A DNA stretch of 64,000 bases. Source: Camelus ferus (Eukaryota). Below, one piece after another: positions 11,788-61,943 of the stretch. The notes beneath the pieces were generated by a model. That model was given only the letters and a program-made list of their open reading frames with translations, ran no database searches and had not been told where the DNA came from. The position numbers and the translations under genes are program-made. The DNA is taken from NCBI RefSeq assembly GCF_009834535.1, contig NC_045727.1:6820001-6884000 (forward strand), in the 5' to 3' direction. Position 1 is the first letter of the stretch. Every line of letters begins with the position of its first letter.

Positions 11788-11890
11788 GGGGGAGGGTATA
11801 GGTCAGTGGTAGAGCGCATGTCTAGCATCATGAGGTCCTGGGTTCAACCCCAGTGCCTTCATCAAAAAAAATTGTTTTAATAAAAATAAA
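11788..11890 (+). mobile_element. Camelid-type tRNA-derived SINE
   Basis: ggggagggtataggtcagtggtagagcgc...ggttcaacccc; degenerate TSD aaataa(c)agttgtt(a/g)aatt. Confidence 0.9.
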
Positions 11891-49271: not shown

Positions 49272-50400
49272 CTGGAGGAAACAACGAGATATTTCGATGA
49301 CTAAGCGTGTCCACCAGCTAATATGCTTCAATTGAAATGCTAATAAAAGGTGATGACAATCATGATCAAGTCCTTATAGCTGTCAAAAATGGGAATTCAA
49401 CACAATTCTTGTATATCACATCTAACTTGATCCTCAAGGCAAAGATTAAACTCACTGCACCGAAGAGAAACCTGCAGCTCGGGCAGGCAAAGGGATCTGC
49501 CAAAGGTCACTCAGAGCAGGACTACACCACCAGTGACCATCACAGTAGCCCAAACAGGCAAAAAATTAGAAAAATCTCTTTAAATTTATAAAAATGAAAT
49601 CATCTCTAAAAATATTTATTACAAGGCAGGACAAGTTACTGCGTATGTATAAAGCCAAGCTAACACAGGGCTGATAATTACGGTGGGTTCAAATCATCTG
49701 AATTCACACACCTACTCAAAAAAAAAAAACAAACCAAAAAAACCCCTTCCCCACCAGGACTTCAGAAACTCAGGATCTCTCTGAGGGTGGATCATGGTGG
49801 CTCTTAGGAGGAAATTATTTAGAGGAGGAAGAGTCTTGTGAGGCGTGTGTAAGTAATCACAGTGCTTAAGACAAAAAAAAAAAAATCCTCTGTCATTCCA
49901 TCCTCCAGCCTAGCGCTGACTTAAGTGCCGTTTGGGAAGGAACCACCATGAACACCGGGCTGGCCTCTCCTGTAAGCTGGGACTGGGAGCGGCCTGCGAG
50001 ACCCTCACCAGAAGCGAGCCGTGAACAGCTGCTGGGATTAGCGGCGCCTAGTACTTAACTCCACAGAGAGAGCAAAACTGAAAAAGCCTTCTGGTTTCAT
50101 TTTCAGAAATGGATGTATACTTAATCTTAGATTTGATGCCTACACAGAAGAAAACAAGCAAATGTTTCTTTTACAATAAATCTTAAAGAAAAGACAAAAA
50201 CAACTTTAACACAGCAGGGATAAAAAGAAAAAAATCAGGGAGGGTGTCCTGAAGGTTTGCTCCAGTTTTCATGACTGTTCTTAGCAAATGATGGATGTTT
50301 TAGTTTTGCAAACTGCAACAACTCCCTGTCAGACATTCAAATGCTTTCTCAACAGCATGATAATGTGATCACACAAATGGCAATAATATCGTGCACTTAC

Positions 50401-50422
50401 CTGGTCTCTTGGGTGACTTAAG
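50401..50422 (-). CDS. SUDS3: SUDS3 exon 9, 22-nt microexon: LKSPKRP(A)
   Basis: ttcctacag|CTTAAGTCACCCAAGAGACCAG|gtaagt. Confidence 0.95.
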
Positions 50423-50585
50423 CTGTAGGAAGAACAACAACAAAATCTTAGAGAAAATCACTTCAGATGCAACTTAACGTGTCAAAGTTATCGAAATGAC
50501 TTCACGAGTAACGTGTGAACAAAATAAAGCAGAAAACTGTAATCAAGCCTAAGCTTTCAAGTAAATAAAAAAAATCAAACTGTAC

Positions 50586-50647
50586 CTTATTTAACGTTCT
50601 CAGATCCTCCATGATCTGTTCATCTGTTAACAAATAGTTTAGCTGGG
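50586..50647 (-). CDS. SUDS3: SUDS3 exon 8 (62 nt): (A)QLNYLLTDEQIMEDLRTLNK, Sin3-interaction helix
   Basis: ctcaacac|CC CAG CTA AAC TAT ... AAT AAG|gtacag. AC acceptor and GT donor. Confidence 0.95.
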
Positions 50648-51614
50648 GTGTTGAGAGTTAAAGGAATGTGTTGGAAAAGGATGGCTTCGAAGCAAACAGA
50701 AATCAACAAAATGGTGTCAGCGTTTTAGAATCTACAAAGTAAGATTACGTTCAATGATGTTTCTACAGTTTGCCTCTTGGAACTTTTTGATCCTCCTACG
50801 AAATGTCGTGGAGTCAGTTACATAAAAGAATTCACACCCTACCCCTCTCCACCCCCGCCCCATCTTACAAATTTCTATGCTGAGAAGGTAAAATGAGAAA
50901 CAGTGAGAGCTCAGGACACTGTAAGGACCTCATCCTCCATTGATGAGATGCTTTTGTTCCAAAGATGGGGAGACTTCCATACACATGGGATTAACCTTGC
51001 CCAGCAATAGAAATTCTCAGTTGTGAAGATGAAGGGACCTGAAGTTACACCCTTTCCTGGGGGCAGACAAGTAACGAAATCATTCTGTACAAATGGCTAT
51101 TTATTATGCCCCCAAGAGGACAGAAACAACACTCCCCGATGTGTCCCCTTCCCATTCATTCCCATTTTTATGATTAAAGGGGCTTCTTGATGTCTGACTA
51201 CAATCTCATCTGCTTTAATTAAACCAGTTTGCAATCCACTGTTTTGGGGAAACTGCTAACTGAAGTTAAAAAAGGAGGCAGATATTACTGTTCTCATTTC
51301 ACAAGCGGAAAAATTCAGGCACATGGAATTCTCACTTACCCCCAAATCTCCAAGTGAGTGTTCAAACCAGCACAAGGTACCTTTCCAAATAACTGCTCTC
51401 TATATTAATCCCTCCTACTCAAAACAGTAACGACTAAGGATTCCAATTATAAAATGGCCATCCTCTATCTCATGGATAAATACATACGCTTTCCAACCAA
51501 GTATGACAATTTCTGTAGGACAATGACCATGTATATAGTCCACCAAATGGAAAAGCAAAGGATTCAATACTCTCAAGGAAAAAAAAGTGACTAAGGCTCG
51601 ATGCAGATGGATAT
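50648..51614 (-). other. SUDS3: SUDS3 intron 7, U12-type (minor spliceosome) AT-AC intron, 967 nt
   Basis: 5' end ATATCCATCT; branch site TTCCTTTAAC at 50666-50657; 3' end TCTCAACAC. Among the boundaries I examined, only these join ...KPAP to AQLNY... in frame. Confidence 0.93.
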
Positions 51615-51710
51615 CAGGTGCAGGTTTTCTCCTCTTGTCTGGGATGGGGACGGGGTCATTCGGTCGCCTCCGCAACTTTCTGGTCATGATGGGTTTCACT
51701 TCCATTGAAT
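51615..51710 (-). CDS. SUDS3: SUDS3 exon 7 (96 nt): (D)[31 protein letters not shown]
   Basis: gccacag|AT TCA ATG ... GCA CCT G|atatccat. U2-type acceptor and U12 AT donor. The peptide is visible in ORF 51415..51744. Confidence 0.95.
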
Positions 51711-52329
51711 CTGTGGCAAAAATAGAATGGGTAAGTCTATCCAACTCCCACCTGAAGTCAGTAGGAATTCCTGTAGTGTTAGAACGTCAGCCCCAGAGCC
51801 ACCCAGCCAGAACTGTTTTACTGGGGACGTGTGGTCCACACAGGGCCCATGTCAGACACCCGTATCAGACTGGAGGGGCAGAGGGGCCTGTGCTCAGGAG
51901 ACTCACACCGGCTGATCGAAGCGCACGTGCCTCTCAGAAACACAGCCCCGCCCTGCAGCCTCCCACCGCAGCCACGCCGGCATCTCCCCGGCTCCCTGGA
52001 AACGAGGCATTCTCCTCCTCCCTCAAATCAAGAGGCCACAGAGCAGGGGGCTCTTGGGATTGGAAGGAGCCTTTGGATCATCTCAGTTGGTTAATTCCTG
52101 CTGTCCCCACAGACGGTGGGTGAATAAAACCCACTGGCATAAAAGGCTCTTTGAGAGGCCACTGGCTTCAGTCCCAGCATTTTCACATGGGCTCTTCATC
52201 TACAAACCTGGACTGCCCCTTTATTTTATTTTATAACCTTTTGTAGCTACTTAACTATCAAGAATGATACAGTGAAGACTCTTAATAAAGGCCTCTCTTC
52301 ATCCTCCTTGACACCTCTGTACAGTCTGA

Positions 52330-60825: not shown

Positions 60826-61842
60826 CTCAGGAACTCAGAGTGGGGGCCTGGGATGGGGGGAGGGGTGAACCACAGCAGCTCCATCTCCTGTTTTCCCTGC
60901 ACCCCCACGGCCTACAGCTCCTTTTCTGCATGTTGTTGGACACGGACATCTACTCACTGGGGAGGAGAAAGAAGGGTTCCATCCACAGAAAGTTGGAAAG
61001 TCAATGGATCAGAAAGCGAGAGGACAGGGGCCTGGGGAGTGGCAGCCCAACATTCATGTCACCACTGCAGGAACAAGCACCACACTTGCGCTGAAAGTGC
61101 TGGCCAGCAAAGAACTTCAAAATGTACCACTTACAGAAGACTTCCTGTCAGTGCCTCAATCTGTCTACACATTTTATTTCAACAGTCATGGCATCTTACT
61201 TTTTGAATGAGTCTCTAACTCATAAGGTTCCTTAACTTGACATGTGTGGATATCTTTTGTCAATGAAACACCAAGCTTCCTGAAGTCAAGCGTTACTTTA
61301 CAACGCTCAGAGTGGGGATGGAGCAGATGCTCAACACATTTTGCCGAATGAATACACTTACTGTGTACAACAGACCAAAAGCACACTGTTTTTCTCTAAA
61401 TGCTTATAATACAACACTTAAGGGGAAAACCATGAAGATCCCTTTTCTTCCCAGAGCACAGGACACCAGAAGCAGCAAACTCAAAACAGGAGTGAGACAG
61501 CCAACAATCCTTTCCCAAGTCAGCTTCCCCGATTGTCCACTAAACCAGCTATGCAGATCCAAGAAAAAGCGTGCGAGACTGCTGCGGGGGCACCAGGGAG
61601 CAGAGCCCGACTACAGGGAGCCCCACTAACAATCTCCACTCCAGGCCATTTGTTGGCAATAAAGATGAACAGTTGCACAAGACTGCGGCTTTGGGGTCTC
61701 TCCTTCCCAAAACTCACCCCCGCAATGGGACATTTCAGAAACATACTGGAGGATGGCTCTCATGGCCACAGTACATCGAAATCGATGATCAGTAAGAGGG
61801 CAATTGGAAGAGGATTTGTTTACTGGTAAGATAGAGCCTTGT

Positions 61843-61931
61843 GGGGAGGGTATAGCTCAGTGGTAGGGTATGTGCTTAGCATGTACAAGGTCCTGGGTTC
61901 AATCCCCAGAACCTTCATTTAAAAAAAAAAA
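61843..61931 (+). mobile_element. Camelid-type tRNA-derived SINE beside the exon 4 donor
   Basis: ggggagggtatagctcagtggtag...ggttcaatcccc, poly(A), and TSD atagagcctt (61831-61840, 61932-61941). Confidence 0.92.
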
Positions 61932-61943
61932 ATAGAGCCTTAC

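Follow-up and report, generated by a model that had tools for sequence, protein, structure and literature searches.

Intron 7 of camelid SUDS3 carries AT-AC termini and the U12-type signals of its human ortholog

Described minor introns in SUDS3 and its relatives

Introns of the minor class are recognised by base pairing of U11, and later of U6atac, with a 5' ATATCC box and of U12 with a branch box, and their 3' end is set by its proximity to the branch A and not by a pyrimidine tract. By established knowledge, the AT-AC intron of P120 (NOP2), a gene unrelated to SUDS3, shows these features in a form much like that described below: it has an ATATCC donor, lacks a pyrimidine tract and carries a TCCTTAAC-like branch box near its 3' end. 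The P120 intron has served as the classical U12-type model in minigenes (cited in PMC8280824).

The closest described system is intron 7 of human SUDS3, which is listed as a U12-type AT-AC intron in Datasets EV1-EV3 of the CENATAC study (EMBO J 2021, PMC8280824); the original prediction for the camelid locus had allowed that the human ortholog might already be catalogued, as is indeed the case. Dataset EV1 places the intron at chr12:118400755-118401758 (SUDS3, AT_AC), scores its donor at 0.85 and its branch site at 0.89, and gives its donor as CCTGCTCCAG/ATATCCATTTACATC, that is, ...CCAG/ATATCCATTT, its acceptor as ...CAGTCCTTTAACTCTCAACAC/CCCAGC (in short form ...TCCTTTAACTCTCAACAC/CCCAGC) and its branch sequence (bp_seq) as TCCTTTAAC, a slash marking the splice junction here and below. 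When CENATAC is depleted, its mean PSI rises from 0.16 in control cells to 0.40 at 24 h and 0.59 at 48 h (padj ~1e-19, EV1). The PSI also rises from 0.05 to 0.35 in ZRSR2-mutant patient cells (EV2) and from 0.08 to 0.20 in CENATAC-mutant patient lymphoblasts (EV3). The same study compares "SUDS3 minor intron 7" with major intron 5 by RT-PCR (Fig. 4), labels the primers SUDS3_U12_AT-AC, and puts the human total of major AT-AC and related introns at 85. In the RBM41 study (NAR 2024, PMC11039992), SUDS3 intron 7-8 was one of three U12-type test introns for lariats, which were assayed by RT-PCR across the branch junction after RBM41 immunoprecipitation; RBM41 is reported there to co-precipitate U12-type lariats in preference to U2-type ones.

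SUDS3 is not the only member of its family with such an intron, as human SUDS3, BRMS1L and BRMS1 are each listed with one U12-type intron (PMC8280824, EV1-EV3). The BRMS1L intron is AT-AC like that of SUDS3 (..GTTGTTTCAG/ATATCCTTT), whereas the BRMS1 intron has GT-AG termini (..CTGGTTTCTG/GTATCCTTT), and the donors of both paralogs, ATATCCTTT and GTATCCTTT, are closer to the consensus than that of SUDS3. The published flanks of the three genes show the intron interrupting a codon between its first and second bases, immediately ahead of the Sin3-binding helix (..VVS G/GT CCA.., ..LVS G/GC CCA.. and ..PAP G/CC CAG..); judged from these flanks, the intron positions would be either exactly homologous or one codon apart. 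These likenesses in sequence suggest an old minor intron of the family that may have changed subtype in BRMS1. A text search of the literature found no paper on U12 introns common to the BRMS1 paralogs.

The camelid gene and the anatomy of intron 7

The window analysed here is a stretch of 64,000 nucleotides from Camelus ferus (NCBI RefSeq assembly GCF_009834535.1, contig NC_045727.1, positions 6,820,001 to 6,884,000). Using short peptide anchors and then exact exon edges, we placed SUDS3 on its minus strand, where the gene extends from 63581 or beyond to 40179 (Table 1). Exons are numbered as in human (PMC8280824, PMC11039992), exons 1 and 2 lying outside the window. When joined, the ten exons within it read through in one frame for 257 codons, free of internal stops, up to the terminal stop. 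The assignment of the gene to SUDS3 (SDS3) is supported by sequence matches of two exons: exon 6 taken alone matches Pfam PF08598 (Sds3-like) with an E value of 3e-05 and 24.6 bits, compared with a cut-off of 25.4 that applies to whole proteins, and the 21-residue peptide of exon 8 equals chain A of PDB entry 2n2h (E 8e-08), which is named Sin3 HDAC corepressor complex component SDS3. Exons 5 (20 nt) and 9 (22 nt) are very short and easy for gene predictors to miss.

Table 1. Exons of SUDS3 in the window and signals of its intron 7
Feature	Position	Strand	Remarks
SUDS3 exon 3	63581-63526	-	
SUDS3 exon 4	62015-61944	-	
SUDS3 exon 5, 20 nt, ELFLQLE	58752-58733	-	normal AG/GT edges
SUDS3 exon 6	57503-57347	-	Pfam Sds3 match
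SUDS3 exon 7, 96 nt, ends with first base of Ala codon	51710-51615	-	AG acceptor 51712-51711; frame open, joins exon 6 and exon 8
SUDS3 intron 7, AT-AC termini, U12-type	51614-50648	-	ortholog of human chr12:118400755-118401758
U12-type 5' splice site box ATATCCAT, +1 to +8	51614-51607	-	identical to published human donor core
Branch-site box TCCTTTAAC; candidate branch A's 50659 and 50658	50665-50657	-	same 9-mer as human bp_seq in PMC8280824
3' terminal AC, 10-11 nt downstream of branch A's	50649-50648	-	last 18 intron and first 6 exon bases as in human
SUDS3 exon 8, 62 nt, last two Ala-codon bases and 20 residues	50647-50586	-	Sin3-interaction helix
SUDS3 exon 9, 22 nt	50422-50401	-	normal AG/GT edges
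SUDS3 exon 10	49271-49166	-	
SUDS3 exon 11	43196-43112	-	
SUDS3 exon 12	40277-40179	-	

Eight of the nine SUDS3 introns in the window are GT-AG, as had been predicted for all introns other than the seventh, and intron 7 alone is AT-AC. Read from the sequence of the window, intron 7 spans 967 nt. Exon 7 ends in ...GCACCTG, its last letters being AAACCTGCACCTG at 51615, and the intron opens with ATATCCATCT from 51614, so that the AT occupies 51614-51613. It closes with ...CACATTCCTTTAACTCTCAACAC at 50648, the AC occupying 50649-50648, and exon 8 begins with CCCAGCTAAAC at 50647 (CCCAG) and is followed by a normal GT donor after 50586. Against the consensus RTATCCTT, the donor agrees at +1 to +6 and at +8 and has A instead of T at +7. 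The branch box TCCTTTAAC is TCCTTAAC-like, with one T more than the consensus TTCCTTAAC, and its two candidate branch A's, 50659 and 50658, lie 11 and 10 nt from the C that ends the intron. Box and 3' end are separated by TCTCAACAC only, so that a polypyrimidine tract is missing there.

The original prediction had described most of this anatomy, and it fares well here: the exon 7 and exon 8 edges with the restored KPAP-AQLNY proved exact to the base and in frame, the branch-site A placed about 10 nt from the AC was measured at 10 and 11 nt, and the long polypyrimidine tract said to be missing is indeed absent. Its statement that the intron bears U12-type signals needs a qualification, in that both are present but neither is perfect, the donor having the non-consensus A at +7 and the branch box the extra T.

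The camelid intron shares with human SUDS3 intron 7 the gene, the intron number and the split of an Ala codon (phase 1), together with the 5' core ATATCCAT, the branch 9-mer and the last 18 intron bases, and is similar to it in length (967 nt compared with 1004 nt in human). In an alignment of the 25-mer around the donor, 21 positions are identical, including all of +1 to +8; the four substitutions are two silent changes in the exon, C for T at intron +9 and G for A at +11. The 46-mer around the acceptor is identical at 38 positions: the last 18 intron bases, which reach from the branch box to the AC, are unchanged, as are the 6 bases with which the exon opens, while 9 of the 22 that precede the branch box differ. 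A conserved core thus stands beside a diverged flank, and we therefore take the camelid intron as the ortholog of the human one, with its functional core under constraint. Its anatomy, its unique in-frame junction and the identity of its signals with those in human are direct observations of this analysis.

It should be noted that the conserved signals are slightly weak ones. Both fall below consensus because of the A at +7 and the extra T in the branch box; among the rows listed from PMC8280824, all 12 other A-type donors have T at +7, and the human SUDS3 donor score of 0.85 is the lowest. These departures are shared base for base between camelid and human.

Apart from the gene itself, an Rfam scan of the window outside 50392-50446 gave no match in or near SUDS3 intron 7 and two tRNA-like matches elsewhere. 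Camelids carry a SINE family derived from tRNA-Ala (vic-1). The first match is a tRNA-Ala(AGC)-like element at 61846-61917 on the plus strand, inside SUDS3 intron 4 (Rfam tRNA 49.5 bits; also found by ARAGORN), which is followed by an A-run and flanked by the direct repeat ATAGAGCCTT at 61831-61840 and 61932-61941. By its sequence, 61831-61941 as a whole resembles a SINE of tRNA origin that is bounded by a target-site duplication and lies antisense to SUDS3; as it starts only 12 nt into intron 4, a T-run directly follows the exon 4 donor. The second match, downstream of SUDS3 at 11792-11861 on the plus strand (Rfam RF00005, 43.3 bits), probably represents a further SINE of this kind.

Intron class and competing explanations

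Loose pairings of such motifs are not rare. The two strands of the window together contain 16 copies of ATATCC and 12 of a U12-like branch box, and a loose scan returns 26 pairings of ATATCC, branch box and AC; motif co-occurrence without exon context is therefore no evidence. The placement of the two boxes in SUDS3 is another matter. The specific 9-mer TCCTTTAAC is found near an exon of the window at 50665-50657 only, and donor and branch boxes both sit exactly at edges that the protein fixes. From the observed motif frequencies, we estimate the chance of both boxes falling at one fixed pair of edges at ~1e-7, and their coincidence is not due to chance.

Taken together, the AT-AC ends, the two boxes at donor and branch site, the closeness of the latter to the 3' end, the lack of a pyrimidine tract and the unique in-frame junction all fit the U12-type AT-AC intron that had been predicted, and we consider it very likely that the minor (U12-dependent) spliceosome removes intron 7 of camelid SUDS3, which is the ortholog of intron 7 in human SUDS3. 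Dependence on minor-spliceosome factors has been demonstrated by others in human cells, and by analogy the camelid intron would be expected to share it.

The strongest competing explanation, which we consider highly improbable, is that intron 7 is an AT-AC intron spliced by the major (U2-type) spliceosome. Termini alone leave the class undecided, as the text of PMC8280824 points out, and the off-consensus +7 and the additional branch-box T could be read in the same direction. Against this stand three marks of the U12 class, namely the ATATCC at +1 to +6, a branch box whose distance to the 3' end is 10-11 nt and the missing pyrimidine tract, and also the behaviour of the human ortholog, which has the same signals and responds both to CENATAC depletion and to ZRSR2 mutation, whereas not one major AT-AC intron responded to CENATAC depletion (PMC8280824). 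Human SUDS3 intron 7 also served as a U12-type test intron for lariats in the RBM41 study (PMC11039992).

The chance is slighter still that the true edges of the intron are a nearby GT-AG pair and that AT-AC is an artefact of fitting the protein. Candidate dinucleotides do exist, with GTs at intron positions +24 and +45 and within exon 7, one AG lying 38 nt upstream of the terminal AC and another 4 nt inside exon 8. The pairings checked, those of the exon 7 frame and of the in-phase GT at +45 with each of the two nearby AGs, all shift the frame, and on this basis such boundaries were rejected: the AG at 50644-50643 in exon 8 leads to a stop after a few codons, and that at 50686-50685 adds 38 nt. 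The AT-AC junction, which splits the Ala codon as G/CC, tolerates no displacement, since a shift of one base either way alters PAPAQ; the human RefSeq junction is identical, and the residues A-Q-L-N-Y read across it are those of the solved SDS3 peptide (2n2h). Equally slight is the chance that the locus is an inactive copy whose splice signals are irrelevant, for which we found no supporting point, against ten exons separated by introns, a frame that runs without interruption through 257 codons to its stop, and coverage of the SUDS3 locus by contigs from RNA runs.

Splicing of intron 7 and its meaning for SUDS3

If intron 7 is handled as other minor introns are, U11 and then U6atac would pair with the ATATCC at its 5' end, and U12 would pair with TCCTTTAAC, bulging a branch A. 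The AC 10-11 nt downstream would then be selected as the 3' end without the help of a pyrimidine tract, and removal of the intron would join G/CC into the Ala codon and put the Sin3-binding helix, encoded by exon 8, in frame. The alternatives to this outcome can be read from the sequence. Retention of intron 7 leads to the reading of 66 intronic codons up to a stop at 51417-51415, ahead of the Sin3-binding helix, and skipping of the 62 nt of exon 8 shifts the frame; there is therefore no in-frame bypass of the intron.

The original prediction had gone further and proposed that expression of SDS3 is gated by the minor spliceosome. This proposal agrees with retention of the intron in human cells after CENATAC depletion and in ZRSR2-mutant cells, but in camelid RNA contigs intron 7 is not selectively present. 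Of the words sampled from 50350-51800, a stretch made up mostly of SUDS3 intron 7, the contigs of RNA-labelled runs contain a fraction of 0.68-0.84. A U2-type control, SUDS3 intron 9 (49280-50380), is at least as fully represented, with 0.97-1.00 of words present in the runs common to both searches (intron 9 against the intron 7 region: 1.00 vs 0.74 in X5, 0.97 vs 0.84 in X1 and 0.97 vs 0.69 in X7). These contigs thus give no sign of selective retention of intron 7, and in view of the control we rejected the presence of intron 7 as evidence for retention of a minor intron. As the U2-type intron is covered more fully, the libraries must carry intronic sequence generally, from pre-mRNA or DNA. 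In the contigs of RNA-labelled runs of small size (0.4-1.0 billion letters), several of which are registered under 'reproductive system metagenome', introns 7 and 9 are almost completely represented. This suggests that these libraries are rich in pre-mRNA or genomic DNA. Support for the view that intron 7 may limit SDS3 output thus comes from human cells.

A bolder reading is that intron 7 is a conserved and deliberately weak minor intron, such that the activity of the minor spliceosome, which is CENATAC-dependent in human cells, sets the amount of SDS3 competent to bind Sin3. This reading builds on the two below-consensus signals, unchanged from camelid to human, and on the place of the intron immediately ahead of the exon for the Sin3-binding helix. 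We regard it as unlikely. If it were true, the retained SUDS3 transcripts would either be degraded or encode an SDS3 without the Sin3-binding helix, and a U12-type intron at approximately the same place in SUDS3, BRMS1L and BRMS1 would fit an old and maintained arrangement.

Since human SUDS3 intron 7 has already been published and tested, the camelid finding is without novelty: the intron is known through its human ortholog, and the species alone is new. Its practical consequence lies in annotation. A gene predictor limited to GT-AG introns would break SUDS3 at exon 7/8 in the camelid genome, and the junction 51615^50647 should therefore be recorded. Beyond the correct annotation of SUDS3 the value is small. 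The modest additions made here are the conservation of weak signals in the camelid, the position of the intron directly before the exon for the Sin3 helix and the occurrence of a U12-type intron at about this place in all three human members of the family.
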